From Macrostomum lignano (Eukaryota), in assembly GCA_002269645.1 (NCBI GenBank), contig NIVC01000694.1:62001-126000 (forward strand): a stretch of DNA of 64,000 nucleotides, given 5' to 3'. Under the pieces are notes generated by a model, which searched no databases, was not told the DNA's origin, and saw only the letters and a program-made list of their open reading frames with translations. The position numbers were made by a program, and so were the translations under genes. Every line of letters begins with the position of its first letter. Within the stretch, counting starts at the first letter, position 1. Positions 6,751 to 59,500 of this stretch are shown in pieces.

Positions 6751-6752
6751 AA

Positions 6753-11396: not shown

Positions 11397-11562
11397 TTTG
11401 CCTGTTCTCCTCGATGCTGGCTGTTCGTGCAAAGCGTACGCAGAGGAAGCTCGCTTATGGCATTTATTTTCTGTTGTAACCAGGTGAGCCTGAACTTGGC
11501 GGACCAGTGCCAGGCAACTTGTGGAGTCGCGAGTGCTTACATCACTTACATGTGCTTACATC

Positions 11563-13660: not shown

Positions 13661-13670
13661 GTGGGTGAGG

Positions 13671-22742: not shown

Positions 22743-24432
22743 TCAGGACGTCTCCTTCCTGACACCGCGTTTCCGCACTTGCTGACCGGAAGTGGCCGGA
22801 CGGGGATTCTCGGCCAGCTCGTCCGAGTCCTCGCCGCTGGCCTCATCCGGCTTGTCCACCTTCGCCGAGTCGCCTTTCGCGTCGCCGGGAACTGCGGCCG
22901 CCTCCTGCTGCCGGTGCCGCCGCCTGGCGCTCAGCAGGTCGCACAGGCAGACGAGGATGAGGCCGGCCACGAGGCCGGAGACCAGGGTGGCCAGCGCCAG
23001 CACCAGATAGGCCAGCGGGGAGGGCAGGCCGCGCTCCTCCACCAGGTGAGTGTGCAGCTTCTTCAGGCGGACGGCGGCCTGAATGAGGCGGCCGAGGCAG
23101 CGCATGTGCAGCGCTGTGGGCACCCGGTACCACGGCAGCGGCGGAAGGCGGGCGTACTCGGCCTGAGTTCGGGTGGCAAGTATTAGCCGCAACTGCCTAC
23201 TCATAGTAGAATCGTTTGCTGAGTCAGTGTTCCCATCTCATCCCAGATTTGAGTCCACCCTCATCATGATCCCACCTCATCCAAATTTAAGCCTCCTCAT
23301 GATTCCATCTCAACCCAGATTTGAGTCTCCTCATCATGATCCCATCTTATCCAGATTTGAGTCCATCCTCAAAATCATCTCATCTCGTCCCAGATTTAAG
23401 TCCACCTTCATCATGATCCCATCTCATCCCAGATTTGAGTCCACATTCATCATGATCCCATCTTTTCCAGATTTGAGTCCACCCTCATCATGATCCCATC
23501 TTATCCAGATTTGAGTCCACCCTCATCATGATCCCATCTCGTCCCAGATTCGAGTGCACCCTCATCATGATCCCATCTCGTCCCAGATTCGAGTCCACCC
23601 TCATCATGATCCCATCTCGTCCAAGATTAGAGTCCACCTTCATCATGATCCCATCTCATCCCAGATTCGAGTCCACCCTCATCATGATCCCATCTCATCC
23701 CAGATTCGAGTCCACCCTCATCATGATCCCATCTCATCACAGATTTGAGTAAACCCTCATCATGATCCCATCTCGTCGCAGATTTGAGTAAACCCTTATG
23801 ATCCCATCTCGTCGCAGATTTGAGTCCACCCTCATCATGATCTTATCTTACCCAGATTTGAGTCCATCCTCATCATGATTCCATCTTACCCAGATTTGAG
23901 TCCATCCTCATCATGATTCCATCTCTGGACAACTTCGAGTTTACCTAATGATCCATTACACCTTGAGCCCAGGCCGCCATCCCATACCCCATGAGCAGCT
24001 GAGCAGTCGCGCTCACAGCCCCACACAGCCGGCAGTCACCTGCTGGATGTAGCGCAGCAGCGCAGGCAGTGACCGGTCGCCGCTGTGCTGCCAGAATTGG
24101 CCTTCGTGCAGCACGTACAGAGAAGGCAGGCCGGTGACCAGGAACATGCCAGCCAGGGCCTCGTTCCTGGTGACGTCCACCTGGGCGATGCTGACATCCC
24201 GCGGCAGGTCCTCACTGGCCGCCAGGTTCTGCCAGGTGGGCGCCAGGCTGCGGCAGGCGTCGCACCAGGGCGCGTAGAATTTGATGAACCAGCGGCCGCC
24301 AGCCAGCACCTCCGGCCAGGTTTCCTCGTCGATGTCCACCCGCATGCCGCCGCGGGCAGCAGCAAGCGGGACTTGGCCAGCCAGCAGCAGCAGCACAGGC
24401 AGCAATGGGAGCAAGCTGCGTTGAAGCAGCAT
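22743..24432 (-). CDS. TMX1: Thioredoxin-related transmembrane protein (TMX1/TMX4-like); exons 24432-24040 and 23162-22743
   Basis: Signal peptide, WFIKFYAPWCDAC thioredoxin site, IAQVDVT..LAGMFLVTGLPSLY, phase-0 splice, LHTHLVEERGLP, a TM helix ending VCLCD, acidic tail and RKR near the C-terminus, matching TMX1 architecture. Confidence 0.88.
23255..23925. repeat. 39-bp minisatellite (~17 diverged units) in the TMX1-like intron
   Basis: Unit CATCATGATCCCATCTCATCCCAGATTTGAGTCCACCCT. Confidence 0.95.
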
Positions 24433-25237
24433 GATGGCAGAGTACTGCATGAATTCAAACAGCTTGACTTGCACTGCGCTCGCATGGGAGGCTGGGAGCC
24501 AAAGAATGTACTTTTAGCAAATTATGTTGCAGTAGGAGTTAATTTTCTGATATGATGGCAAGCATACAAGTTGCTAGCTAATATGGGCATATATAGACTG
24601 CCTATTTAAAAAGGCAAACATCCACAGACCCTACAACTAAACTGAAGCTATGCTACTGTTAGTAGTATCTATTAGTAGCATATCTCCCTGTGGTATTTTA
24701 GTTATGGTGAAATCAATTAATTCTTTGGAGCTTCAAAAGGAAATTTAAATAGAAATAAAAATACCTTTTTTGCTTTCTGAATATTGAAAATACAAAGCAT
24801 TGCATCTATAACTGCCTGATTTTACAAGTCTATCTATCTTGGCTTACAAGCATAAACCAGAATTTCTTTAATGTTTTAGGCCCAAAAATGTTAAACCCAA
24901 GCTTAAAGTTGTCTACTAGGCCTAGCAAAAGCAAAAGTTGGCAAAGTCTGTTTGCTTAAGGTTGTATTTTTTTACTTTTTCTCATCCTTTTTTCTTATTT
25001 GGCTTATGTTGCACATTAGGTTTTCTAATCATCTGCACCCTATATTAGAATGAACCTAAAAATAGATGAGCCTAGACACTTAATCAAGCATGCAGAAAAA
25101 CTTTGATTCTAAGCATATAGCTATGTAGGATCATAAGAATAATAATAAAAAAGGAATTCTTAGAATATGGCTGTCCAGAAAGTTGTGAGAATGTATTTAA
25201 AAAACCAGTCAGAACTATCAGAAAACATGATAACATA

Positions 25238-29172: not shown

Positions 29173-32100
29173 ATGTTGAGTCGAGCGCACACATTTCACG
29201 GCGACTCGACGGCGGCCAGGCGGTTCAACGTGTCGACCCGCATGAAGGAGTCGCCGCAGGAGCCGGTGCGACTGCCGCCGATTAAGCGTGAGCCATCAGC
29301 TACTCGTATCTGTTTGCCAAGCATTCACTGGCTGAGTAGTTTACAGGCAAAGCAGTGCACTTTAATCAATCAATTAATGTAGATTTCGAACCCTACTCCA
29401 GCGTGCCTGTTAACATCAACTGGGATTTCTTCAAGAAATTCAAGTACGCGAAAGCTGGTTTTCAACGTGTGACAATCTGTTGGCTACGGCCGCACTAGAA
29501 ACTTAGATTAAGGAACTTTTCAGTTGTCCTTGGTTAGCCACTGAAGGTTGATACTTGCACAAGTTCATCAAATGGTTTTTCAGTTGTCCATGGCTAGCCA
29601 CTGAAGGTTGATACTTGCACAAGTTCATCAAATGGTTTTTCAGTTGTCCATGGCTAGCCACTGAAGGTTGATACTTGCACAAGTTCATCAAATGGTTTTT
29701 CAGTTGTCCATGGCTAGCCACTGAAGGTTGATACTTGCACAAGTTCATCAAATGGTTTTTGTTATTTTTGCTAGTTTTTACCCTAGATTTTCACCAATTA
29801 AATCTTATTGTCTCATTTCTAAGGCTTAACAGTATTGGTTTTGTCAGCCTAACTGAGAGTAAAGCCATCCAAAGTGAGAATCCTGCCTACGCTGACTGCG
29901 AAGGGCCTGGCTGCGTGCAGCCTTAGTCTATGGGCCATAGACTATAAAGGATAAGCAAAGTGATAGAAAGCCATCCAATGTGAGAAACCTGCCTACGCTG
30001 AATACGAAGGGCCTAGCTGCGTCCAGCCTAGTCTATGAGCCATATACTATAAAGGATAAGCTAGGATTGGCTAGTCATATGGCTCAGAAGCTCAGAAGGT
30101 ATAAAAATAAAAGAATACGACGCATAGACCAATCGATTCTCACATTGGATGGCTTTTTATCACTTTGCTTGTCCTTTATTGTCTATGGCCCATAGACTAA
30201 GGCTGCACGCAGCCAGGCCCTTCGCAGTCAGCGTAGGCAGGATTATCATTTTGGGTGGCTTTATTCTCAGTTGGGCTGACAAAAGCAATACATGTGAAGG
30301 TTATTAAACCGTGACCCATGACCGTGATCATTTGCAAGAAACACTTCAGACCAAACTTTCACCCTCTGGATAAAACACCACTGAGATTTGGGAGGCAAAA
30401 AGCATATGCAACAAAGGCACATGTAAGCTACTCGAAATAGAAGCGTGTGTTTTACTTACTATTATATTACGCTTTCGTGGCTCCCTAGGGACCGAGTACT
30501 CGTACTCTGCAGCTATAAATGCCCTTCATTTAACCCCTACTCACAGACAGCTTCAAACAATAGAAAATTTTATCATTATACCATTTTGCCAAACTGCTAA
30601 CAAGCTTCTGTGCAGCGAGGCGAGCGGACAGAATTAATGACGACCCCGTCAAGCTTGAGACTCGCCTTAATCCCTTAATTGTTCTCTCATCGCTGCAGTG
30701 CTCAATGCCGCGCAGTTACTAAATTATGCCAGGTGGCTTAGAGTGGTAATAGTCTATCTCTGAGTCTGTTCTACTCAGCCGTCAAGCCCTTTTTTGAACC
30801 AATCTCTGGCAGCCTCTGAAGCGAGCCCTCAGCAGGCGGCCGGCCTCAACAACGAGCTGATCCGCCTGCGCGCCCAGCAGACAGTGGGCGGCAACCCGAA
30901 GCTCTGCTTCTCGGAGGCAAGTTTTTTGGAGACATGGAAATCTTAATTGTAATAGTGACTTGAGCAGACATTCAGCCTCAGCTGCTCTGTTCATTTTAGT
31001 GATTTGAGCAGACATTCAGCCTCAGCTGCTCTGTTTATTTTAGTGACTTGAGCAGACATTCAGCCTCAGCTGCTCTGTTCATTTTAGCGACTTGAGCAGA
31101 CATTCAGCCTCAGCTGCTCTGTTCATTTTAGTGAATTGAGCAGACATTCAGCTCAGCTGCTCTGTTCATTTTAGTGACTTGAGCAGACATTCAGCCTCAG
31201 CTGCTCTGTTCATTTTAGTGATTTGAGCAGACATTCAGCCTCAGCTGCTCTGTTTATTTTAGTGACTTGAGCAGACATTCAGCCTCAGCTGCTCTGTTCA
31301 TTTTAGTGACTTGAGCAGACATTCAGTGTCAGCTGCTCTGTTCATTTTAGTGACTTGAGCAGACATTCAGTGTCAGCTGCTCTGTTCATTTTAGTGACTT
31401 GAGCAGACATTCAGTGTCAGCTGCTCTGTTTATTTTAGTGACTTGAGCAGACATTCAGCCTCAGCTGCTCTGTTCATTTTATAGCGACTTGAGCAGACAT
31501 TCAGCCTCAGCTGCTCTGTTCATTTTAGTGAATTGAGCAGACATTCAGCTCAGCTGCTCTGTTCATTTTAGTGACTTGAGCAGACATTCAGCCTCAGCTG
31601 CTCTGTTCATTTTAGTGATTTGAGCAGACATTCAGCCTCAGCTGCTCTGTTTATTTTAGTGACTTGAGCAGACATTCAGCCTCAGCTGCTCTGTTCATTT
31701 TAGTGACTTGAGCAGACATTCAGCTCAGCTGCTCTGTTCATTTTAGTGACTTGAGCAGATATTTAACCTCAGCTCTTCTATTTATTTCAGACCACAGTGT
31801 TCCCAGCTAGAAAAGAGGTAGGTCCACTTTTGACGAAGTGTGGCAATCTGATTAGCAAAACCTAGTTTAAATACATGCATGCAGAACAGTTTAGTCTCAG
31901 GCATTCAATTTCGCTTGGCAGCCCAAAACGGCCATCTCGGTGCACCCGAAGTTTCTGGACGAGCCGCCGTCCGGGCGCTACTATTACCCCGGATACTCTC
32001 CCTACCTGATGGACCGGGACAGCGAGCAGCGCTACTTTATATCCGGCTACTCCGGCTTTGTGCCCCGCCTGCGGCAACGCCTGGGTGGCACCTACCCGGT

Positions 32101-32968
32101 GCTCACACACGACGCTCTGGAGGACTTCGACCGGGCCAGGCGGCTGCACGCGGCTGCGCTGGCCGGGCTTGAGGCCTCGGACGCTGAGGCTGTCGGCGAG
32201 GAAAAGGCGGCGGGCCAGGCAGGGCGGGGGCGCCTGCGGGGGAGGCGTGGCGAGGGGGTCATCTACCGCAAGTGCGAGGGGCTCCTGCCGAACTATTACG
32301 GACACATCCCAGGTGAGCAGGCGGACTCATTTCTGCAGAAGGCGCTCAAAATAGGCCACAATTTATTAGAAGTTGGTTGGCTACTAATTCCCTAAAATCT
32401 CTGAACTACATGAATTGGTCTCCTTAACGGTACTTTTACAGCGCTGACTACACTTACATTTTAGTATAAGATGTGCACTAAGCATATTTGTCTCTGATAA
32501 TCAATTTTTTTCAAGCAATTCTGTAGACCTGGAAATCTGCTTGCTGATATACCTACACTTTCTCTAGCAGTTGGGATCTCAAAACAGAGATGATGTAGCT
32601 CGAACTTTGTATATAGTCCTTTTCTATTTTTTATTATTGTCTTGTACACGATTGCTACGTCCAGGGATCTGCTCTGGGATTCTGTTCTGAGATTCTATTC
32701 TGGGATTCTGTACTGGGATTCTGCTCTGGGATTCTGTACTGGAATTCTGTACTGGAATTCTGTACTGAGAATCGGTACTGGGAATCTGTACTGGGATTCT
32801 GTACTGGGATTCTGTACTGGGATTCTGCACTGGGATTCTGCATGCGAAAAGCTTCTGAGCACGGCAAAACAGCGCCAACTTGTCCCACCTTTGACTTTCG
32901 CAGGCCACCGTCGCCGCTTCGGACAGTCTTTCGGTCGCATCACCGTGAACGCCAGGGAGCTGGCCTAG
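29173..32968 (+). CDS. FAM166/CIMIP2-like ciliary microtubule inner protein, 224 aa; exons 29173-29287, 30813-30916, 31922-32312, 32904-32968
   Basis: All four exons join in phase; two FAM166-type repeats (FISGYSGFVPRLRQRLGGTYPVLTHDAL and LLPNYYGHIPGHRRRFGQSFGRITVNA); intron 2 has a GC donor. Confidence 0.8.
29521..29760. repeat. 60-bp tandem repeat x4 (intron 1)
   Basis: Unit CAGTTGTCCATGGCTAGCCACTGAAGGTTGATACTTGCACAAGTTCATCAAATGGTTTTT. Confidence 0.97.
29832..30291. mobile_element. Foldback/MITE-like element with ~155-bp inverted arms
   Basis: 29832-29986 is the near reverse complement of 30137-30291; the spacer holds a direct copy of part of the left arm; TSD not resolved. Confidence 0.7.
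30955..31775. repeat. 44-bp minisatellite, ~19 units (intron 2)
   Basis: Unit GACTTGAGCAGACATTCAGCCTCAGCTGCTCTGTTCATTTTAGT. Confidence 0.97.
32665..32845. repeat. 13-bp minisatellite (intron 3)
   Basis: Unit GGGATTCTGTACT, ~13 copies. Confidence 0.93.
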
Positions 32969-34193: not shown

Positions 34194-36227
34194 CTAAGCA
34201 CGAGGCTCCACGTAAAGCTCTGACAGAACCTGCAGGTACCCATTATCATCCACAAAAGTGCGAAGGACCTCCTCCATGGGATCATCACGCCTGGACTTCT
34301 TAGTTGCAGGGTCAGAGACTGAAAATCATCATGGAAAATAAAAATAATGCGTAAGGATTTGCGCCATTAAATTTAGTAACAAAACGGTTACCTGACGGAT
34401 CGTTTGACAAATTGATCAGCTCCAGTTTCACCGGCTCGCTCGAGTCATCATTCCTCTTGTCAATGAGGGTCACAGAAAATGAGCCGGAAACAACGTTTGT
34501 CAAGGTCAGCTGCTCGAAGTTGAACACTACCAGGTGCTGTAAAGGCATTAGGAACATTTAGAGGCATGAACGCACGAACTGACAAGATGACCAAAATTTT
34601 TCTGATCGACATTAAATAAGCTTCCGTTGCCTCTGAAAACATACCTGGGATAAAAGGTTATCGCAATTGCATGATTGAAGACCTTTAAGTTGGATTGCAA
34701 GCAGTGATTTGAGGGGTTGCTAACGTACAGCTCGTGCTTCTGTTCCACCTTCTATTACAGTGCTTTTGAATAGGTAACTATGCTGATCACTCAGCCCTGA
34801 CTGAGATTGCGTAATTATGCAGTGTATTTCTGCATCAGTTTACACATGAACTCTGAGACTTTACCTTCTTCAACTCCTTTGGCTGCAGCTCGATAATCAA
34901 AAAAGGCTCTGATTTCTGCTCCAGCCGCACAGTTAATTCGGAAACTTTTTCAGCTGCAATTGTGATCTGATTTATTTGCATTCAGGAATTCAAAAATGCA
35001 CAATTTGGTAATCCAAATAAAAGCTGCATACCTGGCAGATCGTCCTTCGTGTAAAGCCACACGTCCTGGTCGGGACGCGACACCGAGTCCGGAATGATTA
35101 ACTCGATTTCCATTTTGGAGAAGATCTCTGGAATGAAATAGCTCTTGTTCTAAGTCAAGCAGTCTCTCAGGTCATCTACCTGATTGCAAATACCTAACGC
35201 AAAGTTAAAGGGAAAGTTCACTCACTGGCATCTCCAATGACTTCGGTGTACACAGGTCTGCAGTCCGCAGCGAGCCAGTCACTTGAGCCCGGCAGCTGAT
35301 AAAACACTTGGAAGGCCAGTCTGAGTTTGTTGATGTCTTTGCCTAGGAATGGCCTCTCCCTTGGATCCTCTGCGGATGAATGAGAGCTTACCTTCTTGAA
35401 AAGACGGATTCAGCGTTTTGAAGGTCTATCAAATCATGACTTACTTTTAAAAAAGTTGTACTTTTGAATTCTTTCCATGTAAAAGTTATCTTCTTGTGCG
35501 GTTCCATTCTGAAGGCCGATATACGCTGGAAATCCATTCTCAGAGGCTCCGCTCGGCTTGCCTTTCGACTTCCTCTGCTTTTTCGGAGTGCACACGATGC
35601 CGACCTTCTCCAGCCTGAGTAGAAGCAGAATGCATCGATCAGGTAGTATGTGCAACAGGAGATCCTTCAGCTCTTTCTAATACTTTGTTTCCTAATGTCT
35701 TTATGTTCATACTTGCACTTTTAGCTCACTTTTTATGCTGTGTGGGCCAGCATAAGCCCAGAGCCCGAAACAGGAGAACGGAATTCGCAAAAAGTCTTGC
35801 CTCTCCACACTTCTAAAACTGACCCATGCTCGACTTCTTCCGAGAAGGAAAAAGTGGACACTCCTCAGATAAACTAGACTGCGATAAAGACTGAGACTCA
35901 CTTCACTTCCTGCTCGGATGGCCCGGATTCGCTGCTCAGCTTCTTCTCGAACACGCCGTTCCGACAGTCGTCCCCAGTCAGGTAGAACGGGTGCGTCATC
36001 AGGTCCTCGAATACGGTGCAGCCGACCAGCTTCAGCTTGCAGTCGGGGCTCACAGATTGGACAGTCGCAGTCACCTCAACTGGATGCCTGCCTCCAGGAG
36101 CGCGGCTGCGCAGAACACTGCCCATGCGGCCATCGCTGACCTCCCTCAGGTAGCGAAATCGATGGATTTTCGTCGGCTGATGCTGATCAGCGATGGACAG
36201 AGACAGCTTGGGAGCCGGTTCAGACAT
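34194..36227 (-). CDS. Rel-homology-domain transcription factor, paralog 1 (364 aa); exons 36227-35902, 35614-35445, 35369-35226, 35127-35032, 34953-34865, 34536-34392, 34318-34194
   Basis: Seven exons join in phase: QPTKIHRFRYLRE loop, HPFYLTGDDCRNGVF, LEKVGIVCTPKK, INKLRLAFQVF..PVYTEVIGD, IPT-like DQDVWLYT..ELTVRLE..ELKKHLVVF..VTLIDKRNDDSSEP, basic KKSRR and a short acidic tail. Confidence 0.85.
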
Positions 36228-36329
36228 TTGCGTTTGCTGGATAAAAATATGGCAAGGCGTGGGGAAGCAGTTGTTGTGCAGCTGTCAGGAGGGTCGCCAC
36301 ACACATCCTTAATAACCCCGGCTAATTCT

Positions 36330-36480
36330 AGCAAACATTTTATTGCTGGGTGCACCGAAGCAATGCAGAGTTAAGTGGTCTTGCTCAAAAACACAAACTG
36401 TTTTGAGTGGGTCTCAATCAAACCCTCGACAGCTCGGTCGTGAGTCTGACGCTCGAACTGACCACTATGCCACAACCCAT
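36330..36480 (-). mobile_element. tRNA-derived SINE fragment with CORE/V-like central domain
   Basis: Minus strand has A-box-like TGGCATAGTGG, B-box-like GGTTTGATT, then TTTGAGCAAGACCACTTAACTCT..CACCCAGCAATAAAATG resembling conserved SINE central domains (from recall). Confidence 0.5.
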
Positions 36481-39063
36481 AGCAGATTAAAAATTAGAAA
36501 CTATACAGTTCTGCAAGAGCAGTGCAATCAGTTGGTTCAGAATGAGCAACTTATTAGATACTCAAAGCGATTACAATCTCAGAATTTAAACCTCTTAGTT
36601 TTCATTGTTTGCTAAACATTCTATTTTAGAAGAGAAAACAAAGCTACGAGTAGGAGAACCGGGGAGCTGGACCAAGAAGAGTGAGGAGAGACGTAGAGTG
36701 ATCAGAAGAACTCTCCGGAATCAACAGGTTTTTATTGCCGCTCAAAGCTTTGTTCGCAAACCATAATTTGTGAATGAACAGGTCAGCAGTTTCAGTCAAT
36801 AAAGTTTTCGAAACTATAAGTCACAATAGCGCATGCGGAACCTCAAAAGTCATTTTTTGCTCAGAAAAATGGCTGCACTATGCGCACACGTTCGATTATT
36901 ACGTCCCTCTAAACGCTTCTTACAACTTAAACCATTATGAGCCGGGATACGCCTTGTTGTTAATGCCTTATTTTAATCCAGCCTTGTAACCCCACTGTAG
37001 ATTGGCAGTCATCTTGGACACAGAAATGCCGCACGAGCTGTGACCCAGTACATGTACGCTTTGCTCCACAGCAGCTTTTTAATTCCATACAGATGTTCCA
37101 CCGATACTGCTTACTTGATAATCTACTCGTAACTTGATAATGCTTTATTTGTTGCTTAATCGCTTGCTTAATGAGCAGTCAAAATATTCTTCAGAAAATG
37201 TATTCTCATCCGTGCATCAGTGCAAAATCGACCCTTAGAAGTTAATTTATTCGAGAGTTGCCAGCATTGCTACCCAAGAGACTCCTTCAGTTCACTGCAA
37301 ATCAAAAAGGACAGTTCTTTGATGAAGCCTGTAGCCCCAAATAACCTGAGATTTCTGGGTTAGCTACTCATACAAGTGAAGCGTCTTATTCATCGCAGGA
37401 TACACACAGGACGCATCAATCACTGCGGCATATTCGGTGCGTGCTTGAAATATGTATGCACTAAACTTGGCAGTCGCCATATTTCATCAACTTTAAACTC
37501 CACAATCCTCATATTTCACAACCCTTTATTTAACTCTCTCCCAAGTTTTTCCCAATCCCTAATCTATACAAGAGTCTCAATCTTCACATTGTGCACACGC
37601 TTTCACAACCTCAATTTGGGATAGTATTTGGGACTGAAATATGAGGAATATACATTTTGAGGTGTTTCGCTTCCCTCTGAAAATCAGCAAACGATTTATG
37701 GATATAGCGAGTGTCCTGAAAACCGTTGCACTTTATGCGCACCAACTGTGAGCTAGCATTTTTATTTTTGCCCTTTAACTTAAGTTACTTAACGGTGATA
37801 CAGTAAGCGTGTGCCAGTCTCAGAAAACTAATTTGGAGGCTAGCTACGAGCTCGTATATTGAGCTAAAAAATTAAAAATTGTAGATGACCGCGGTCAACA
37901 CTTCAAAGCCCACTAACTCCATGAAGAGACATAAAAGTTTCATTAAAAGCTTGAAAAGCAGGCAATTTAATTTGCTCACAGACACAACTTTAACCACGCA
38001 ACCAAGCAATTCAAAAGTTATGGAAGAAGCAATTTATGAAAAATCGAACATATGCAATATGGGGATGCAAATTTTTGTGATTGTGAAGTTGGGGGTAATT
38101 GTGAGTCGTGAAAAATTGGGAATGAGAACATTTCTCAGACGCCGAATCATATGTATTAGCACTGCTTGAATTTTTTTACGTTTAAAAAATTTGCCCAACA
38201 CTAATAATACATAGAGTGAATGATCAAGCTGGAAGAAATTAGGTTTCAATTTTAATTTAAAGACAAAATCGTTAAAAAAAACACTTACTTTCGAAGCAGT
38301 ACTTTTTTGACGAAAACAGCGACAAAACTGCAATAATGCAGCAGCAGTCTGGCCGCTTTTAAAAGGAAAATAAGGAACTCCGCAAACGACAGAGTAGGCT
38401 GTACAATGAGAGTACAGTGTATGCACGCAAAACTATACGTACACAGACATAGAGAGAACAAAATGAAGTGGAAAAACCATGGAAAAGCCGTCAGAACATG
38501 GAGCTATTAGCGTACATTACTTGTGCGAGTACTCTCAGCGTGTGCATTCAAAAGCGAAGCAATTTGCTCTGGGAATAGTGAGACTATACTTCAGCTTTTA
38601 AAAAATGAAATAAATAAACAGTTGCAAACAACGACATTTCAAGTTAGTACGCTCTCAATATTAAGAACTTAAATGAAGAATGCTGGCATTATCAGTGTCC
38701 TTGTACGCGTTCCGAAGAAAGTGGCATTATGGCTCTGCATTTCCAAAAAGTGATTAGCTGTTGCAGATGATAGAAAAATTAAATTAAACAAAGGGAAGAA
38801 TTCCTCCTGAAAAATTACGAGCTCAGCATGTGCACTTGTACAAGCGAACCAACATATTCAACAAGTAGAACGCCGCGTCGCATTGCACAGCCAACTTGAG
38901 GCGACTGAGTTAATGTTAAAATTTCAGACTCGAAAAACTCAAAGCCAAAGCCGATGCTGACAGCGGAAAATTCAAATTAGAGCATTGATGCTGAGTAAAA
39001 CAAAAGTTGGAAAGCCTTAGTCTTTTTTTCACTCAACTCTTGGTCTTTATGATTCGGTCAGTT

Positions 39064-41171
39064 CTAAGCACGAGGCTCCACGTAAAGCTCCGGCAGCTCC
39101 TGCAGGTCTCCATTACCATCCAGAAAAGTGCCAAGAAGCTCATCCATGGGATCTTGAGAAACAGTTGGCTTCTCATCACGCCTGATCTTCTTATTTGCAG
39201 GGCCTGAGCCTGAAAATCATCATGGATAATAAAAGTATTGTTAAAGGATTTACAGCATTAAATTTAGTAACCAAACGGTTTACCTGACGGATCATTAATC
39301 AGCTCCAGTTTCACCGGCTCGCTCGAGTCATCATTCTTCTTGTCCACGAGAGTCACAGAAAATGAGCCGGAAACAGCGTTTGTCAAGATCGGCTGCTCGA
39401 AGTTGAACACTACCAGGTGCTGTAAAGGAATTAGGAACACGCTTTAGAGACATGAACGCACGAACTGACAAACTGACGAAGGTTTTCTCAGTACTACTAA
39501 TCTTCAGCAGCTTCTGAAAAACATAACCGGGACAAAAGGCTATCGGAATTGCATGATTAAAGAACTTAATTTTGATTACGAGTACAACCAGTGATTTCAG
39601 AGGCTGCAATCGTACAACCCATGCATGTGTTCCACCGTCATGTACAGTACAAATTAAATAGGTACCTATACTGCTCACTCAGTCCTGACTGAGATTGCGT
39701 CATTAAACACGTGCATCGGTTCCAACAAACGCAATAGACTTCCTCAATTCTCAGTCCTTTACAACGCATTTCTGCATCAGTTTACACATGAACTCTGAGA
39801 CTTTACCTTCTTCAACTCCTTCGGTTGCAGCTCAATAATCATAAACGGCTCTGATTCATGCTCCAGCCGCACAGTTAATTCGGAAACGGTCTGAACTGCA
39901 ATTGTGATCAGATTTATTTGCATTCAGGCATTCAAAAAAGCACAATTTGGTACTCAAAATAAAAGCTGCATACCTGGCAGATCGTCCTTCGTGTAAAGCC
40001 ACACGTCCTGGTCGGGACGCGACACCGAGTCCGGAATGATTAACTCGATTTCCGTTTTGGAGAAGATCTCTGAAAAGAAAAAGCTCTTGTTCTAAGTCAA
40101 ACAGTCTCTCAGGTCATCTACCTGATTGCAAATACCTAACGCAAAGTTAAAGGGAAAGTTCACTCACTGGCATCTCCAATGACTTCGGTGTACACAGGTC
40201 TGCAGTCCGCAGCGAGCCAGTCGCTTAAGCCCGGCAGCTGATAAAACACTTGGAAGGCCAGTCTGAGTTTGTTGATGTCTTTGCCTTGGAATGGATTCTG
40301 CCTTGGTGGCTCTGCGGATGAATGAAAGCTTGCCTTCTTGAAAAGACAAATTCAGCGTTTTGAAGGTCTATTAAATCACGACTTACTTCCAAAAAAGTTG
40401 TACTTTTGAATTCTTTCCATGTAAAAGTTATCTTCTTGTGCGGTTCCATTCTGCATGCCGATATGTGCTGGAACTCCATTCTCAGAGGCTCCGCTCGGCT
40501 TGCCTTTCGACTTCCTCTGCTTTTTCGGAGTGCACACGATGCCGACCTTCTCCAGCCTGAGTAGAAGCAGAATGCATCAATCAGGTAGTAGGTGCAACAG
40601 GAGATCCTTCATCTCTTTCTAATACTTTGTTTCCTAATGTCTTTATGGTCATACTTGCACTTTTAGCTCACTTTTTATGCTGTGTGGGCCAGCATAAGCC
40701 CAGAAATACAGGGTCCGCAACAGGAGAACGGAATTCGCAAAAAGTCTTGCCTCTCCACACTTCTAAAACTGACCCATGCTCGACTTCTTCCGAGAAGGAA
40801 AAAGTGGACACTCCTCAGATAAACTAGACTGCGATAAAGACTGAGACTCACTTCACTTCCTGCTCGGATGGCCCGGATTCGCTGCTCAGCTCCTTCTCGA
40901 ACACGCCGTTCCGACAGTCGTCCCCAGTCAGGTAGAACGGGTGCGTCATCAGGTCCTCGAATACGGTGCAGCCGACCAGCTTCAGCTTGCAGCCGGGGCT
41001 CACAGATTGGACAGTCGCAGTCACTGCAACAGGAGTCTTGCCTCCAGGAGCGCGGCTGCGCAGAACACTGCCCATGCGGCCATCGCTGACCTCCTTCAGG
41101 TAGCGAAATCGATGGATTTTCGTCGGCTGATGAGCGATGGACAGAGACAGCTTGGGAGTCGCTTCGGACAT
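39064..41171 (-). CDS. Rel-homology-domain transcription factor, paralog 2 (recent duplicate of paralog 1)
   Basis: Same exon structure; HQPTKIHRFRYLKE, identical HPFYLTGDDCRNGVF, in-frame exons where checked, tail KKIRRDEKPTVSQDPMDELLGTFLDGNGDLQELPELYVEPRA-stop. Confidence 0.83.
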
Positions 41172-41735
41172 TTGAGTTGCTGAAACACATTTACACAGGT
41201 ACAGAACGCATTTGATCACATTACCATGTTCTGGCAATAATCTGTGTCTATCCTCGTTAAATTGTTCTAGGATGTCTCTATGCAATGTGATAGGACACTA
41301 TGGATAAAGGCTACATTTAAACTATGGATACAGAGAGGAACAAATGTGTCCTTTGCCTGCTGTTGTTATAAAAATAAAAAATAGACAAAAAATGAAAAAT
41401 ATTCCTTTTTTATAACTTATATATTAATTTAAAAAAGTAAATTTCATTGAGCCTAAATAAAAGAAAAATTTCTGCTCTTCTCTACTCAATTTCTTTTAGA
41501 TTTACCAGTAAGATCCATATCTATAAGATTTTTATGAGTAAGTGTTGCTGTGTTTCTTTAAGTCATCTCAGGAAATAAATTCCATTAGCACAAAGAAGAT
41601 CCTTTGGAATGTAATCCGAAAGTCTGAGTCTCCTGACTCGAAAATTGCTGTCTGCTGAAAAAACGCAGACTGCCACCGACGTGAACTTCGAGTGATTCGC
41701 GCTCGCATTCAATTCGCGGCCAGGGGGCATGAAGG

Positions 41736-43741
41736 TCAAGTCTCTTCCTGCACAAGCGAGGCAGTAGCGGGTCGCTTCCGAGCTGTCCTGGCCTGTTAAT
41801 TGAAGCAGAAGATTTATTTTCCGTCATTGGAGCTCATTTGGATCAAAAAGTCAAAATTTCGAAACTGCTTACAACCTGTTCTCCAGGAAGGAACGCGATA
41901 GTAAGCGCCGAATTTGTTGAGTCCTCGGTTTTGGCCAAGTTCTGTTCGACGAGCACTTTGGCCTTCGTCCGCTCGGTCTTCACGTACATCTGAACGCCTG
42001 GCACAGTGACGATGATGAGGTGCTGCAAGGTACGCAGATTTTTGTCGTTACCTGGCGCATCAAAAGCCTCTATTGTCTGTCAGTATAAACTGCAGGCAGG
42101 TTTTACCTTCATCACTTTTTTTGACACAGCCAGAAACGGGCACAGTTGTCTCACTGCTCTCAACACTGAGCTCGAATACTACTCGAATTTCCTCTTTAAT
42201 TGGCATTTGTGCTGAAAAAATTTATAAATGTTTGGCTCGTCTTTAGAAAGCACGATTCAATCAACAAATTCGTATCTCTAATAACAAAAGCTGCGCCCTT
42301 ACAATTTGTGCAATAGATGGCGATTTCGCCTCCATTTGGCGCAACTTCGGGAGGATTCAATGACTCCGGGCAAATGACCCTGACTTCTTCTGGAGAATTT
42401 AAAGATGAGTTACTGACGTCAACTCTTGATAGAAGCTATGAGTAGTACAGTACTACAGTAGTGACGGCTAATTCATTATTTTCTTGAAACTGTCCAGAAG
42501 GCTCTCGATAGGGCTCGATGAAGCAGAAACTCAAGCCAGAGAATGAGAAACGGAGGCTCAAGAGGACAAAAAAAATTGTACTATTTGTTTAGACTTTCGG
42601 CCCAAAACTAGCTAATGAAAATCTCACTAGTCGTACATACTGATATCGGCGATCACATCACTGAATATTGGCTGCAGGTAGTGGCAGTAGCCAGTGCCAG
42701 AGAAGCTGAGCTGGAAAACCAGACGAATCGAGCCCAGATTTCTGCCGTTGTACTTCTGAGCCGGCTGGTTCAGACCTGGATGAGCAATTCACGTTCGAGC
42801 ATTTAAGGTAAAGTACCGGATGAATTTTCTAGCTAATTAATAAAAAAACTCACCGTTGGGGAGAAGACAGCTCTGAAACTGTTCCTCGCCCTTTTTCAGT
42901 GCCTCCTGAATGGCACCAGACGACGTCTTGCAACGAATAACAGCCAGCCTTTCGAACCTGAAACATCGGACGGTTCCAGAGCGTCAATCATCATTTTGCT
43001 AAGCTTGCACAGCAGCTATAAAAGAGGCGCAGGGCACAGCCATAAAATACTTTGAGATATTGTATACATTTGTAAACATGCAAAGCATAGCCATGAAGTG
43101 TTCTAGAAACTATGACAGGACAGATTCTCCTGGAACCTCAGGGAGCAGCTGGAAGTAATACAACGAGCATCTCCATCATCAACGTTTCCTTCTGTTCTGC
43201 TGTGCATCTCATGTACCTTCAAATTCTAGTAACTGCAAGCCTCTCCCACTGGTAACTGCTGCGCTTGAAGAGTTTAACTACTCGATTTTGTCTGCGACGC
43301 TCTCGTTGAATCGGTTCCGAAAAACCTGGAATTTGAGTGCGGCGTGATCATTACACCCGAACTCAAATACTATACTACTCTTGAGCAAGCATAATTTAAC
43401 ATAATCTAAAAAGAAATTGAGCATTACTTTATTTCAGCATCGCTTTGGGTCCTATTGTCGACGTGCTTCACCCAGAAAAAGCAGCCATCTCTGCAGCCGT
43501 CTCCGTGCAGGTAGTAGGGATGCAGCTCTCCATTCTGACTGGCCACGCACACAAACAACTGCAGCTCGCGGTGCACTGCTGGGTCGATTCCACTGATCTT
43601 CAGCTTGATGAAGGCTCTGTTGTCCTTTCCGGTTGAGCCGCGGCCGAGCAGCAGGCCGCCAATCTTGTTGGTTGAGATCTCCGACTCGTAGCGGGGACGG
43701 TGGTGCTCAACCGGCTGAGTCAGAATCTCTAACGCAAGCAT
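41736..43741 (-). CDS. Rel-homology-domain transcription factor, paralog 3 (divergent, NFAT-like recognition loop)
   Basis: MLALEILTQPVEHHRPRYESE, LHPYYLHGDGCRDG, FERLAVIRCK, NLGSIRLVFQLSF..LQPIFSDVIAD, GGEIAIYC, EEIRVVFE, HLIIVTVP, RKRP; intron positions match paralogs 1 and 2; one exon needs a 1-nt correction in an A7 run near 42116-42122; 5' and 3' ends less certain. Confidence 0.78.
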
Positions 43742-48600: not shown

Positions 48601-51600
48601 CTGATAGACTTAAGCCAGCCTGGCCGAGTGTCGGCCCGCCAGTCCGGCGTGGGACAGAACCCGGATGCGGATGTCCAGCTCGAGGAATCTGGAGAGAAGC
48701 CGAACAGACTGTCCAGCAAGTCCCTGGTTAGCGGGAAGAACATCGGCGTGGAGATGGGCAGAGACTCAGTGGCGGATTCCTACAGAGGCTCGATGGCAGA
48801 CTTTGACGGCGACCCGGATCTCGGAGCCAGAGCTCCGGCGGCGCAGCAGCGGACTGCTGACAGCGGCGCAGACGGTGGTCGGCATGAGCGCGAAGTGCCG
48901 GCCTCGGCTAACATCGTGCCGCTGGGAGACACCTCGGTGAGTGGCCGGGCGCCGCCATCAGATTGGAGCAGTGCTTTGATGAATTGAATTGCAATGCTGA
49001 CTGCGGCTGCTTGTGTTCCAATTGAACTGCAACAGCATGCTGACTGTGGCTGCTTGTGTTCCAATTGAATTGCAACAGCATGCTGACTGCGGCCGCTTGT
49101 GTTCCAATTGAACTGCAACAGCATGCTGACTGTGGCCGCTTGTGTTCCAATTGAACTGCAACAGCATGCTGACTGTGGCTGCTTGTGTTCCAATTGAATT
49201 GCAACAGCATGCTGACTGTGACCGCTTGTGTTCCAATTGAATTGCAACAGCATGCTGACTGCTTGTGTTCCAATTGAACTGCAACAGCATGCTGACTGCT
49301 TGTGTTCCAATTGAACTGCAACAGCATGCTGACTGTGACCGCTTGTGTTCCAATTGAATTGCAACAGCATGCTGACTGTGACCGCTTGTGTTCCAATTGA
49401 ACTGCAACAGCATGCTGACTGCTTCTGTTCCAATTGAATTGCAACAGCATGCTGACTGCTTGTGTTCCAATTGAACTGCAACAGCATGCTGACTGCTTGT
49501 GTTCCAATTGAACTGCAACAGCATGCTGACTGCTTGTGTTCCAATTGAACTGCAACAGCATGCTGACTGCTTGTGTTCCAATTGAACTGCAACAGCATGC
49601 TGACTGCTTGTGTTCCAATTGAATTGCAACAGCATGCTGACTGCTTGTGTTCCAATTGAATTGCAACAGCATGCTGACTGCGGCCGCTTGTGTTCCAATT
49701 GAACTGCAACAGCATGCTGACTGCGGCCGCTTGTGTTCCAATTGAACTGCAACAGCATGCTGACTGTGGCTGCTTGTGTTCCAATTGAATTGCAACAGCA
49801 TGCTGACTGCTTGTGTTCCAATTGAACTGCAACAGCATGCTGACTGCTTCTGTTCCAATTGAATTGCAACAGCATGCTGACTGCTTGTGTTCCAATTGAA
49901 CTGCAACAGCATGCTGACCGCTTGTGTTCCAATTGAACTGCAACAGCATGCTGACTGCTTCTGTTCCAATTGAATTGCAACAGCATGCTGACTGTGACCG
50001 CTTGTGTTCCAATTGAACTGCAACAGCATGCTGACTGCTTGTGTTCCAATTGAATTGCAACAGCATGCTGACTGTGACCGCTTGTGTTCCAATTGAATTG
50101 CAACAGCATGCTGACTGTGACCGCTTGTGTTCCAATTGAACTGCAACAGCATGCTGACTGCTTCTGTTCCAATTGAATTGCAACAGCATGCTGACTGCTT
50201 GTGTTCCAATTGAACTGCAACAGCATGCTGACTGCTTGTGTTCCAATTGAACTGCAACAGCATGCTGACTGCTTGTGTTCCAATTGAACTGCAACAGCAT
50301 GCTGACTGCTTGTGTTCCAATTGAACTGCAACAGCATGCTGACTGCTTGTGTTCCAATTGAATTGCAACAGCATGCTGACTGCTTGTGTTCCAATTGAAT
50401 TGCAACAGCATGCTGACCGCTTGTGTTCCAATTGAATTGCAACAGCATGCTGACTGTGACCGCTTGTGTTCCAATTGAACTGCAACAGCATGCTGACTGT
50501 GACCGCTTGTGTTCCAATTGAACTGCAACAGCATGCTGACTGTGACCGCTTGTGTTCCAATTGAACTGCAACAGCATGCTGACTGTGACCGCTTGTGTTC
50601 CAATTGAACTGCAACAGCATGCTGACTGTGACCGCTTGTGTTCCAATTGAACTGCAACAGCATGCTGACTGCTTGTGTTCCAATTGAACTGCAACAGCAT
50701 GCTGACTGCGGCCGCTTGTGTTCCAATTGAATTGCAACAGCATGCTGACTGCGGCCGCTTGTGTTCCAATTGAACTGCAACAGCATGCTGACTGTGACCG
50801 CTTGTGTTCCTTGGTAAAAACTGACTCCCCTCAGGGCCAGTGATTTTGATAATCATCTTTAATGAGCAAAGGGTTCAATATCATATAATAGGGAGGCGCG
50901 GGGCATGCGGCCTGATATGCAGTCAGATACGCAATATTAAAAAGTGAACAACCAAAAAGATTTTATAAGATTTGCCGGTCAAGTAGCACAATATCCAACT
51001 CAAGTCCAGCATAGCCATCTCAAGTGCATAAAATTCAGTTTAGCTGCCAAAATAGTGAAGTGCAAATTGGCCAATCAGAGCGCTTCTCAATATTACCCCA
51101 CTGTTCCGTGCACTTACGACAACAGATGCAAAAGGCCAAACCAAGTGCAGCAATGCCAACTCAACATTAAATGACTGCTGCACGAGCAGATTATCCGCTG
51201 GGGACATGCAGTGGTTGATAGACAGACGCATTTGAATGAGGAACATTCACAGAAATGAATTAGCTTGCAACTTGAAGTGACTACGAGCGTATGATGCCCT
51301 TGACTTTTGGTCTTTTGGTAACTCTGAATTGACGCCACTTGATGTCTCACTTGAACTGAGTGTTTGCGTTTGAGCTGGCTTACTTGACCGGAGAAGCCTT
51401 TAAACAATCCAGCAATTGTGATATTTGTGATATTTCAGTTCTATGATTGTTCGGGTTTGTGATATTTTGGGTTTGTGATAATTTGGGTTTGTGATATTTC
51501 GGGTTTGTGATAATTTGGGTTTGTGATATTTCGGGTTTGTGATATTTCAGGTTTGTGATATTTCAGGTTTGTGATATTTCAGTTCTATGATTGTTCGGGT

Positions 51601-53494: not shown

Positions 53495-54265
53495 ATGGAG
53501 CAGCCGCCAGCCAGCCTGACCCAGCGGGTGCGCCCCGCGGCGCCGCCCGGCAGCCAATCGGACGACGCCGCCAGCCCGAACGCCAGCCTGCACAGCGAGC
53601 TGAGCGAGGAGGTCTCCGTCCTGGTCAGCGTGAAGCGCCGCCCCCTGGCCGACCGCAACAACAACAGCAGCGGCGACAGCAGCGGCCACTTCGACCCCGC
53701 CTGCTGTCAGGAGCTGCAGAAGCCGCCTCCGCCGCCGCCGCCGCCTCCACCATCGTCTCCACAGCTGACGAAGAAACCGAAGCAGCTGCCGCACGAGGAG
53801 TGCAACGCCGCTGACAAGTGCCGCACCTTTGTTGGCCTCTCGCAAGGTCGCCGCGGCAGCCTCCAGCAGCAGAAGGCGGCCAAGTCAAGCGGCAGCGTCT
53901 GCTGCTTCGTGGCTCCGGACGGCGAGGCCTACAGCCTGACGGACTGGCTGCGCCGCGTCAAAGCGCTCAAGAACGAATTCGGCGGCCTGCAGCGGCAGCC
54001 GCCGCGGCTGCCAACGGAGGCGCCGAGCGTGGCGGCGGTGGAGGCGGGGCTGCGCAGCCGAGCGGCCGAGCGCAGCTACCCGGTGCAGAGCCCGGGCCTG
54101 GGCGTCCGCAACCACTACTGCCGCTACCAGGTGGCCGGCATCTGCAGGCTGTGGCGCCGCAACTGCCCGTTCAGCCACCAGCAGCAGCTGACCACCTGCA
54201 AGTTCTGGCACTCCGGCTTCTGCATGAAGGGCACGGACTGCCCCTTCCTTCACGGCTACGTGTGA
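53495..54265 (+). CDS. Intronless tandem CCCH zinc-finger protein (256 aa)
   Basis: C-terminal CRYQVAGICRLWRRNCPFSH and CKFWHSGFCMKGTDCPFLH; Pro/Ser-rich N-terminus; GC-rich codons. Confidence 0.85.
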   Translation: MEQPPASLTQRVRPAAPPGSQSDDAASPNASLHSELSEEVSVLVSVKRRPLADRNNNSSGDSSGHFDPACCQELQKPPPPPPPPPPSSPQLTKKPKQLPHEECNAADKCRTFVGLSQGRRGSLQQQKAAKSSGSVCCFVAPDGEAYSLTDWLRRVKALKNEFGGLQRQPPRLPTEAPSVAAVEAGLRSRAAERSYPVQSPGLGVRNHYCRYQVAGICRLWRRNCPFSHQQQLTTCKFWHSGFCMKGTDCPFLHGYV

Positions 54266-56510: not shown

Positions 56511-59500
56511 TCAGAGCAGCGAGCAGCAGCAGCTACCGGCCCGTGGGAACTGCTCAATGTACAGCCGGTTCTCGAAGCCGTAAACGAAAAACACGCCGGA
56601 GCCGCCCGAGTGCTGCTGGAAGTGGCACTCGGCTACGGGCACTCCGCGGAGCCGGTGGCGCTGCCTGATCACCCGCTGCCCCTTCACAGCCTTGTCCTGC
56701 TCCGCCACCAGCCTGGCAGAGGCCTCGTTCACCGGCGCGTAGGGAAAATTCAGGATTGGCGACACCTGAATGAAGAATCGAGTTCATGAGTTCATGAGTC
56801 ATGAGTGAGTGAGTGAGTTCATGAGTCATGAGTGAGTTCATGAGTTCATGAGTCATGAGTGAGTGAGTGAGTTCATGAGTTCATGAGTCATGAGTGAGTG
56901 AGTGAGTTCATGAGTCATGAGTGAGTGAGTGAGTTCATGAGTTCATGAGTCATGAGTGAGTGAGTGAGTTCATGAGTTCATGAGTCATGAGTGAGTTCAT
57001 GAGTGAGTTCATGAGTGAGTTCATGAGTGAGTTCATGAGTGAGTTCATGAGTGAGTGAGCAAGTGAGTGAGCAAGTGAGTGAGCAAGTGAGCAAGTGAGT
57101 GAGTGAGTGAGTGAGTGAGTGAGTGAGTGAGTGAGTGAGTGAGTGAGTGAGTGAGTGAGTGAGTGAGTGTGGGAGTGAGTGAGTGAGTGAGTGAGTGAGT
57201 GAGTGAGTGAGTGAGTGAGTGAGTGAGTGAGTGTGTGAGTGAGTGAGTGAGTGAGTGAGTGAGTGAGTGTGGGAGTGAGTGAGTGAGTGAGTGAGTGAGT
57301 GAGTTAGTGAGTGAGTGAGTGAGTGAGTGAGTGAGTGAGTGATTGAGTGAGTGAGTGAGTGAGTGAGTGAGTGAGTGAGTGAGTGAGTGAGTGAGTGAGT
57401 GATTGAGTGAGTGAGTGAGTGAGTGAGTGAGTGAGTGAGTGAGTGAGTGAGTGAGTGAGTGAGTGAGTGAGTGAGTGAGTGAGTGAGTGAGTGAGTGAGT
57501 GAGTGAGTGAGTGAGTGAGTGAGTGAGTGAGTGAGTGAGTGAGTGAGTGAGTGAGTTAGTGAGTGAGTGAGTAAGGGCAGCTCACGCTGTCATCCTCTTC
57601 AGCAAAGAGTACTGTTCCGGACACGTCCCGCACGAGCTCATCCGGCATGTCGGTTTTCTCCTCGATGAAGTCCACCTGCCGCTTGCGCCACTCGCACTTC
57701 ACCTTGATGGAGAACAGCAGCTGCTTATGGCCAAGGCAGGTCGGGCACTCGATTTCACCGGAGCCGCGACAGCCCGGACACCTGAGCGAGCGGGAATGAG
57801 ACGAGGGTGACTGGCACTGAGGGAGGGTGAGTGTGAATGACACTGGGTGAGAGTGAGTGTGAATGACACTGGGTGAGAGTGAGAGTGAATGACACTGGGT
57901 GAGAGTGAGAGTGAATGACACTGGGTGAGAGTGAGTGTGAATGACACTGGGTAAGAGTGAGAGTGAATGACACTGGGTGAGAGTGAGTGTGAATGACACT
58001 GGGTAAGAGTGAGAGTGAATGGCACTGGGTGAGAGTGAGAGTGACTGACACTGGGTTAGAGTGAGAGTGACTGACACTGGGTTAGAGTGAGAGTGACTGA
58101 CACTGGGTGAGAGTGAGAGTGACTGACACTGGGTGAGAGTGAGAGTGACTGAAACTGGGTGAGAATGAGAGTGACTGGCACTGGGTGAGAGTGGGAGTGA
58201 CTGGCACTGGGTGAGAGTGGGAGTGACTGGCACTGGGTGAGAGTAGGAGTGAATGGCACTGGGTGAGAGTGGGAGTGAATGGCACTGGGTGAGAGTGAGA
58301 GTGACTGACACTGGGTGAGAGTGGGAGTGACTGGCACTGGGTGAGAGTGGGAGTGACTGGCACTGGGTGAGAGTGGGAGTGAATGGCACTGGGTGAGAGT
58401 GGGAGTGAATGGCACTGGGTGAGAGTGGGAGTGAATGGCACTGGGTGAGAGTGGGAGTGAATGGCACTGGGTGAGAGTGGGAGTGAATGGCACTGGGTGA
58501 GAGTGGGAGTGAATGGCACTGGGTGAGAGTGGGAGTGAATGGCACTGGGTGAGAGTTGGAGTGACTGGCACTGGGTGAGAGTAGGAGTGAATGGCACTGG
58601 GTGAGAGTGGGAGTGAATGGCACTGGGTGAGAGTGGGAGTGAATGGCACTGGGTGAGAGTGGGAGTGAATGGCACTGGGTGAGAGTGAGTGTGAATGGCA
58701 CTGGGTGAGAGTTGGAGTGAATGGCACTGGGTGAGAGTGAGTGTGAATGGCACTGGGTGAGAGTGGGAGTGAATGGCACTGGGTGAGAGTGAGTGTGAAT
58801 GGCACTGGGTGAGAGTGGGAGTGAATGGCACTGGGTGAGAGTTGGAGTGAATGGCACTGGGTGAGAGTGGGAGTGAATGGCACTGGGTGAGAGTGAGTGT
58901 GAATGACACTGGGTGAGAGTGAGTGTGAATGACACTGGGTGAGAGTGGGAGTGAATGGCACTGGGTGAGAGTGGGAGTGAATGGCACTGGGTGAGAGTGG
59001 GAGTGACTGGCACTGGGTGAGAGTGGGAGTGAATGGCACTGGGTGAGAGTTGGAGTGAATGGCACTGGGTGAGAGTGGGAGTGAATGGCACTGGGTGAGA
59101 GTGAGAGTGACTGACACTGGGTGAGAGTGGGAGTGAATGGCACTGGGTGAGAGTGGGAGTGAATGGCACTGGGTGAGAGTGGGAGTGAATGGCACTGGGT
59201 GAGAGTGGGAGTGACTGGCACTGTGTGAGAGTGGGAGTGAATGGCACTGGATCAGAGCCGCCATTTGCCACCCTGCGACTTTCTAGGAAAAGTCGGTCAC
59301 TCGGGTGCACAAGCAGAGGCAGAAATCTAATTAAGACGCCGCCTGCTAGCCCGACAGCCTCCCAATTCACCTGCTGCCTCCAGCTGCACTTCCGGTGCCG
59401 GGGGGGAGGCTCAGCTCCCCCGGCGGGATCGTCCCGCCAAATTTCTCACCGCCTTGACTTCGTGATTCCCGTTTCCTGGAATGCGTCTCCCCAGTAGTGC

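Follow-up and report, generated by a model that had tools for sequence, protein, structure and literature searches.

How small can a working Rel protein be? Three compact genes in the genome of Macrostomum lignano, a free-living flatworm model with established transgenesis, offer a way to ask. They lie next to one another on the minus strand of a 64,000-nucleotide stretch of contig NIVC01000694.1 (positions 62,001 to 126,000; hereafter the window), and the question that the locus raises before any other is whether they are Rel genes at all. An earlier note, made from the sequence alone, had described positions 34194-43741 of the window as a tandem cluster of three ankyrin-less genes for the Rel homology domain (RHD), and had proposed a lineage-specific radiation of minimal factors that would matter more if the host were a flatworm. 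The host is indeed M. lignano, the window being 99% identical to contig NIVC01001367.1 of that species. We consider it likely that the three genes, here called RHD1, RHD2 and RHD3, are real, and that they are tandemly arrayed members of an expanded family of compact Rel-homology transcription factor genes of the class II (Dorsal/RelA/RelB-like) type.

Three genes with one exon structure

The cluster is transcribed in the order RHD3, RHD2, RHD1, and the span given in the earlier note runs exactly from the stop codon of RHD1 to the start codon of RHD3. Our gene models were spliced by hand at canonical GT-AG boundaries. RHD1 (36227 to 34194, minus strand; exons 36227-35902, 35614-35445, 35369-35226, 35127-35032, 34953-34865, 34536-34392 and 34318-34194) is intact and encodes 364 aa, precisely the length that had been proposed for the first paralogue. 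RHD2 (41171 to 39064, minus strand; exons 41171-40852, 40556-40387, 40311-40168, 40069-39974, 39895-39807, 39419-39284 and 39209-39064) is also intact and encodes 366 aa, and RHD3 (43741 to 41736, minus strand; exons 43741-43428, 42957-42854, 42775-42641, 42389-42303, 42211-42107, 42022-41873 and 41792-41736) yields 316 aa after removal of one A. The common intron positions noticed earlier are borne out: each gene has seven exons, the intron phases are 2, 1, 1, 1, 0, 1 in all three, and the junctions fall at homologous positions of the protein alignment.

Deposited gene models agree with this splicing. The NCBI models P0001, P0002 and P0004, which are paralogous or allelic copies, are collinear with the spliced proteins across the junctions (P0001 and P0002 with RHD2), and RHD1 is 97% identical to P0003 (Mlig033322g3) and RHD3 91% identical to P0004 (Mlig013462g1). 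Deposited and spliced models stop at the same codons, and there is no coding continuation past the stops of RHD1-3. At the other end of the genes, a polypyrimidine-AG read from the sequence precedes each ATG. In RHD1 it is TATTTTTATCCAG, a few bases 5' of the ATG (36228..36240, minus strand); in RHD2 it is TGTGTTTCAG, upstream of 41171, and in RHD3 CTTCATCAG, immediately adjoining 43741 (both minus strand). The three ATGs lie 0-9 nt 3' of the acceptor AG, and the NCBI partial coding sequence of a paralogous copy begins at most 2 nt from that AG. These sites fit spliced-leader acceptors, a role that we infer for them, and the short distance to the ATG would leave no room for an N-terminal region of the NFAT type.

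Could the tandem triplet have been produced by the assembly, for instance by haplotypes or duplicated genome copies being set side by side? M. lignano assemblies are repeat-rich, and identity to NIVC01001367.1 (GCA_002269645.1; locus L001) changes abruptly at ~42625-42632 in intron 3 of RHD3, from 99.09% over 13.1 kb (42622-29577) to 89.4% (44388-42632), a switch that could stem from a change of haplotype, from the edge of a gene-conversion tract or from a chimeric assembly. Nevertheless, RHD3, RHD2 and RHD1 follow one another in this order on NIVC01001367.1 as well, with the same spacing. The RHD3 protein is just 26% identical to RHD1 and hence no haplotype copy of it, and indels in exons 1, 6 and 7 set RHD1 and RHD2 apart. 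We regard an artefact as very improbable.

The three genes are paralogues, as had been claimed, of two different ages. RHD1 and RHD2 are 94.5% identical over 1.4 kb with introns included and repeat with a period of ~4.9 kb; their introns 1-4 are 92-98% identical and the 3' third ~80%. They are a recent tandem duplicate or a gene-conversion pair, and RHD3, with its low protein identity, is an old paralogue. A second cluster (L002, NIVC01000020.1:337347-364600) contains one RHD3-type and three RHD1/2-type copies, and since this content differs from that of L001, copy number is dynamic. The deposited 371-aa model P0001 comes from this second cluster and, given its 7.2 kb span, probably joins exons of two tandem copies.

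The DNA-binding half resembles class II Rel proteins

Pfam RHD_DNA_bind (PF00554, gathering score 27 bits) matches RHD1 at 40.3 bits and RHD2 at 40.5 bits, and residues 1-186 of RHD3 at 46.8 bits over profile positions 1-168, so that the HMMER check suggested in the earlier note recovers the domain in all three genes. Full-length RHD3 gives no match to this profile although its N-terminal 186 aa pass, which may be an effect of the HMMER filters. When the family profile was compared with all PDB sequences, the matches were Rel/NF-kB chains only, in the order RelB (1.1e-14), c-Rel (1.6e-11), p65 (~8e-10) and p50 (~1e-8).

Residues of the loop and linker through which canonical Rel proteins contact DNA are retained. 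In a joint alignment with the canonical RFRYxCEG loop (RFRYECEG), the recognition loops read RFRYLRE in RHD1 (36141..36161), RFRYLKE in RHD2 (41091-41111) and RPRYESE in RHD3 (43679-43699, all minus strand), which keeps the base-contacting Arg, Arg, Tyr and Glu in the form RxRYxxE; the proteins start 10-20 residues ahead of this loop. The motifs HPxxLxGDxC and LRLAFQ, the linker lysine and the basic nuclear localisation signal (NLS) motif all align with homologues of Dorsal, p65 and RelB. Canonical proteins, too, are basic where the linker lysine stands: DKK in the Dorsal and RelB homologues supplies its second K, and DNR in c-Rel its R; we take this residue to correspond to Arg187 of p65. RHD1 and RHD2 also carry a lysine-rich insert of ~25 residues in the N-terminal domain, where model confidence is low.

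A diverged dimerisation domain

Exons 4-6 of RHD1 (34392..35127, minus strand) encode the linker residue Lys214 and a predicted IPT/dimerisation domain (~aa 215-320), and the equivalent exons lie at 39284-40069 in RHD2 and 41873-42389 in RHD3 (both minus strand). Alignment of the family C-terminal halves to canonical RHD dimerisation regions with hhalign gives a probability of 94.9% (E = 4e-8, 97 columns). For a structural view we used the deposited protein P0001, ~88% identical to RHD1, as a proxy and modelled it as a monomer with AlphaFold2 (AF2). With a 57-sequence alignment, the mean predicted local distance difference test score (pLDDT) is 81, and most 10-residue blocks within residues 215-320 score 85-96, a single one falling to 78.

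In a Foldseek search of the PDB with this model, the top 30 matches are all two-domain NF-kB/Rel chains (E = 1e-17 to 5e-13). The best template modelling (TM) score is 0.73, to RelA, and RelB, c-Rel and p50 are also among the best matches; isolated dimerisation domains are matched as well, that of p52 with a TM of 0.72 and that of RelB with 0.69. The IPT domain, recognised by remote homology and predicted fold, is strongly diverged. The order that had been read from the sequence, an N-terminal RHD, an IPT domain, a basic motif and a short tail, is real.

The same two-domain core is found in NFAT proteins, and the genes might in principle encode NFAT/NFAT5-type or other IPT-domain factors instead of Rel/NF-kB. 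TonEBP/NFAT5 (1imh) is among the Foldseek matches at E = 3.7e-9, and a planarian NFAT5 homologue is reported to be well conserved in a 2026 study (PMC13563047). The TonEBP match, however, ranks far below the Rel matches, and the top structural matches are all Rel/NF-kB. NFATc1 reaches only E = 0.44 against the family profile, compared with 1e-14 for RelB. The N-terminal regulatory region of NFATs is absent, with the ATGs as close to the acceptor AG as described above, and a tree (see below) sets the family beside Dorsal, p65 and RelB. We rejected an NFAT identity on the profile scores and the Foldseek ranking, and think it the least credible of all the readings considered here.

Working genes or decaying duplicates

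Several observations weigh against accepting RHD1-3 as real, class-II-type Rel genes. Even at a threshold of E <= 10, Pfam RHD_dimer (PF16179) matches neither RHD1-3 nor their C-terminal halves taken alone, and the best paralogue on this profile, P0007, reaches 14.2 bits against a cut-off of 28.3. Of the earlier claim of an IPT domain, then, the domain itself stands, recovered by hhalign, AF2 and Foldseek, whereas the Pfam check proposed for it finds none. The GG turn of the IPT domain is gone in RHD1 and RHD2, and the redox-sensitive cysteine of the recognition loop is replaced by R, K and S in RHD1, RHD2 and RHD3, respectively. The confident AF2 model depended on canonical Rel proteins among its 57 aligned sequences; with a five-sequence, family-only alignment the pLDDT fell to 45 and the C-terminal half was left unmodelled. 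The close database matches, which are M. lignano proteins only, are all gene models derived from genomes, none from a transcriptome assembly. As assembled, RHD3 loses its reading frame by one base in exon 5. Finally, the ratio of nonsynonymous to synonymous substitution rates (dN/dS) between RHD1 and RHD2 is 0.73 overall (dS = 0.084), a value based on only 68 differences, so that constraint on the pair may be weak; in the first 245 codons, the N-terminal two-thirds, the ratio is ~1.1.

Part of this list, namely the frameshift, the dN/dS values and the lack of transcriptome-derived proteins, would suit decaying duplicate DNA, as would the difference in copy number between loci: in a genome that is highly duplicated and rich in repeats, RHD3 would be a pseudogene, and either RHD1 or RHD2 might be one too. 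Yet RHD1 and RHD2 have full open frames and all their splice sites, and they keep those residues of the loop and linker with which canonical Rel proteins contact DNA. Paralogues as distant as 25-30% identity retain one architecture and its motifs, which needs long-term purifying selection. The frameshift of RHD3, for its part, lies in a homopolymer and is missing from both the 99%-identical copy and the second cluster. We therefore find decay improbable, and real genes the better reading of the cluster.

The frameshift deserves a closer description. In exon 5 of RHD3 a run of seven A (A7; 42116..42122, minus strand) shifts the reading frame, and both L001 and L002 have six (A6) at this place. 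With A6, exon 5 ends in ...SGCVKKVMK, continued by HLIIV across the junction, at a donor site with AAG before the junction and GTAAAA after it, as in the paralogues and in P0004, which reads SGCVKKVMKHLIIV at this site. Because the run is a homopolymer and A6 is present in the two other loci, we favour a homopolymer error of the assembly, or a private allele, over an old pseudogene. The frame could also be rescued by an alternative 55-nt intron (donor 42107, acceptor CCAG ~55 nt downstream), but this would add ~10 residues before the conserved KHL strand; we rejected this intron as less likely than a homopolymer error. That each of the three genes is coding thus holds as it stands for RHD1 and RHD2 and not for RHD3, which is out of frame as assembled.

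Short tails and missing modules

Directly C-terminal to the IPT domain, each protein has a basic motif: KKSRR in RHD1 (34287..34301), KKIRR in RHD2 (39178-39192) and RKRP in RHD3 (41769-41780, all minus strand). These align with the KRKR nuclear localisation motif found C-terminal to the IPT domain in homologues of Dorsal, p65 and RelB, and at this canonical Rel position the motif is a predicted NLS. Beyond it, RHD1 and RHD2 continue for ~30 residues with an acidic-hydrophobic tail (DPMEEVLRTFVDDNGYLQVLSELYVEPRA in RHD1, 34197..34283; its equivalent in RHD2 at ~39067-39153, both minus strand) that contains the motif DPM-D/E-E-L/V-L-x-T-F. Similar D/E-L-L-x-x-F-like motifs are present in the tails of the paralogues P0010, P0013, P0018 and P0019, and we read the tail of RHD1 and RHD2 as a putative small activation motif. 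RHD3 has no acidic tail and ends 10 residues past the NLS.

The larger modules that distinguish other RHD proteins were said to be absent, and this agrees with what we find. In a single-regex scan, all frames of the window were free of ankyrin-like motifs, and no further RHD exons were found in the window outside 34-44 kb; on this negative scan we discarded the idea that more ankyrin or RHD exons lie elsewhere in the window. A long activation domain is lacking too, the stops being shared with the deposited models, and the position of the ATGs near the acceptor speaks for the lack of an NFAT-type N-terminal region.

How might such proteins work? The IPT domain would let RHD1-3 pair as homo- or heterodimers, the basic motif would bring them into the nucleus, and the conserved loop would bind kappaB-like sites. 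RHD1 and RHD2 would probably be weak activators by way of the short acidic-hydrophobic tail, and the tail-less RHD3 type would probably be a non-activating partner similar to p50. The cluster itself grew by tandem duplication. Dimerisation, DNA binding, activation as opposed to repression and upstream regulation are all things that we infer only.

The proteins could also be competitors or dominant-negatives without an activation domain, which would hold kappaB-like sites or titrate other RHD proteins in the manner of p50 homodimers; the earlier note had considered such modulators. All three proteins lack a long C-terminal activation domain, RHD3 stops very soon after its NLS, and the coexistence of several paralogue types makes heterodimers plausible. 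Against this, RHD1, RHD2 and several paralogues share the recurring D/E-L-L-x-x-F tail, by which short activation motifs are usually recognised, and the matches that we looked up included no M. lignano Rel or NF-kB protein of the long form that could be a partner. As a description of the whole cluster we consider this idea unlikely. It seems to fit RHD3 better than RHD1 and RHD2, since RHD3 is without the acidic tail. For the cluster as a whole we keep to compact Rel-type transcription factors.

A Macrostomum family of about ten groups

An exhaustive HMMER scan of 1.84 billion representative proteins returned 16 matches at E <= 1.1e-26, followed by a gap. After the gap come a transcript, P0021 (1.2e-12), and a C-terminal fragment from M. 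lignano, P0022 (2.6e-12), and ordinary Rel proteins such as RelB and Dorsal begin at ~2e-10. Among the 18 best matches (to E = 2.6e-12), all 17 with a source name are from M. lignano, the remaining one being P0021, and a weaker match, P0033, is likewise from M. lignano. When variants of the gene models are collapsed, ~10 paralogue groups of Rel-like proteins remain, each of 340-390 aa. Several have consecutive NCBI accessions on single contigs (e.g. PAA90847-90851), which indicates further tandem arrays. The proposed lineage-specific radiation is well supported by these counts. No planarian sequences are identifiable among the family matches.

In a rough neighbour-joining tree on long branches, all Macrostomum members fall into one clade with 100% support, together with the mollusc protein P0044. 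P0021 is sister to this clade, followed by Dorsal, p65 and RelB, with p105 outside; the phylogeny suggested in the earlier note, run in this rough form, thus sets the family beside these three. P0044 is an RHD protein of 969 aa from Potamilus streckersoni, and P0021 a 417-aa product of a transcript from SRR26183987 with no close named homologue. The placement of these two may hint that the divergent clade is older (spiralian) than Macrostomum, or it may be due to long-branch attraction.

It is tempting to speculate that Macrostomum replaced the canonical NF-kB/IkB module with some ten types of fast-evolving, tandemly amplified minimal Rel factors that make up a combinatorial dimer code, perhaps driven by pathogens. 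The basis for this is that dN/dS comes close to 1 across the DNA-binding half in the youngest pair, together with the fact that copy number differs between two loci of the public assembly. If it were true, regulation without ankyrin inhibitors would be needed. We hold such a replacement to be doubtful, and about as probable as the competitor role discussed above; a tandemly expanded family of compact class-II-type factors remains the reading that we prefer.

Comparison with known systems

The RHD of RHD1-3 appears closest to class II, without ankyrin repeats, since RelB, c-Rel and p65 rank above p50 among the PDB sequences, the nearest named proteins outside Macrostomum are RelB and Dorsal, and p105 lies outside the group in the tree. 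Like the class II proteins Dorsal, Dif, RelA/p65, RelB and c-Rel, the Macrostomum proteins have a two-domain RHD with the RxRYxxE loop and a basic linker residue, an NLS right after the IPT domain, and no ankyrin repeats. Class II also provides the best match in sequence (RelB, 1e-14) and in structure (RelA, TM 0.73), and its members are the closest named proteins in the tree. There are differences as well: the proteins of the window have 316-366 aa, compared with roughly 550-700 aa in class II, and tails of at most ~30 residues in place of a long activation domain. The loop cysteine is replaced (R/K/S), the IPT domain is too diverged for Pfam RHD_dimer, and RHD1 and RHD2 carry the lysine-rich insert.

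With class I (p105/p100/Relish) the family has the RHD fold in common, and p50 and p52 are strong structural matches to the P0001 model. However, the glycine-rich region, ankyrin repeats and death domain of class I, seen for example in Tachypleus p105, are not found in the window, and profile scores for class I are weaker than those for class II. A separate protein met in the course of this work, P0124 from the hemichordate Ptychodera flava (1299 aa), joins ZU5, UPA and death domains to a canonical RHD, an architecture that we ourselves had not met before.

RHD proteins without ankyrin repeats are also known from early-branching lineages. Nv-NF-kB of Nematostella is one such ankyrin-less NF-kB, and the NF-kB paralogues of the choanoflagellate Acanthoeca spectabilis are said to heterodimerise. 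The A. spectabilis proteins NF-kB1-3 are likewise ankyrin-less (PMC8677719), and they resemble RHD1-3 in consisting of the RHD or little more and in occurring as several paralogues per genome. They are described as class I-like, whereas class II gives the better scores with the Macrostomum family; and unlike the ankyrin-less NF-kBs of early-branching lineages, the Macrostomum family is recent, restricted to its lineage and arranged in tandem arrays.

Nearer to Macrostomum, seven highly divergent RHD factors with no clear NF-kB are described for the planarian Schmidtea mediterranea in PMC13563047 (2026). The Schmidtea factors resemble the Macrostomum family in being flatworm proteins on long branches without clear NF-kB orthology, and differ in that neither tandem clustering nor compact size is reported for them in the passages that we consulted. 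The statement in the earlier note that NF-kB is reported missing in planarians and schistosomes holds in one respect, a 2024 survey having found no p50/p105 in Platyhelminthes and not naming the phylum among those with c-Rel (PMC11432056); it does not extend to RHD factors at large, given the seven in Schmidtea. Like the Schmidtea factors, the Macrostomum genes show that flatworms kept RHD factors despite surveys that list NF-kB as absent.

The value of the finding is limited by the classical nature of the fold and of the domain order, and by the fact that proteins of the family are already deposited under the automatic label "RHD domain-containing protein" (others as "hypothetical"). In the literature that we searched, no paper describing the Macrostomum RHD family was found. 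The ~10 groups of compact Rel-like proteins in M. lignano offer an entry to the roles of RHD factors in flatworm immunity, stress response and regeneration.

Other features of the window

Much of the remaining window consists of repeats. At 2405-9200 a non-LTR (long terminal repeat) retrotransposon is flanked by two arrays of one 26-nt minisatellite (2405-2944 and 8666-9200), as if the element had inserted into a single array. Its open reading frame (ORF) for reverse transcriptase and RNase H lies at 3503-6178 (minus strand), and an upstream ORF at 7372-8196. A second, truncated reverse-transcriptase ORF (11427-13023, plus strand) matches Pfam RVT_1 at 64 bits. A 4.2-kb array of a 45-nt unit follows at 13670-17840, with 93 copies, 95% matches and a GC skew of -0.6. 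At least 18 further minisatellite arrays are present in the window, for example at 49009-50794, 57807-59257, 60241-61272 and 61517-62726, and many of the arrays give rise to long spurious ORFs.

Four other ORFs resemble known domains. An exon-sized ORF with SH3 and SH2 domains (10812-11432, minus strand) probably encodes the N-terminus of a Src-type kinase or of an adaptor. The thioredoxin-domain ORF at 24013-24474 (minus strand, 64 bits) is TMX/PDI-like and has a hydrophobic N-terminus that, by eye, is a possible signal peptide. Directly downstream of the RHD cluster, a weakly CMI2B-like ORF (ciliary microtubule inner protein; 31940-32395, plus strand) agrees with a gene called in L001, and an ORF at 53495-54265 (plus strand) ends in a CCCH zinc finger.

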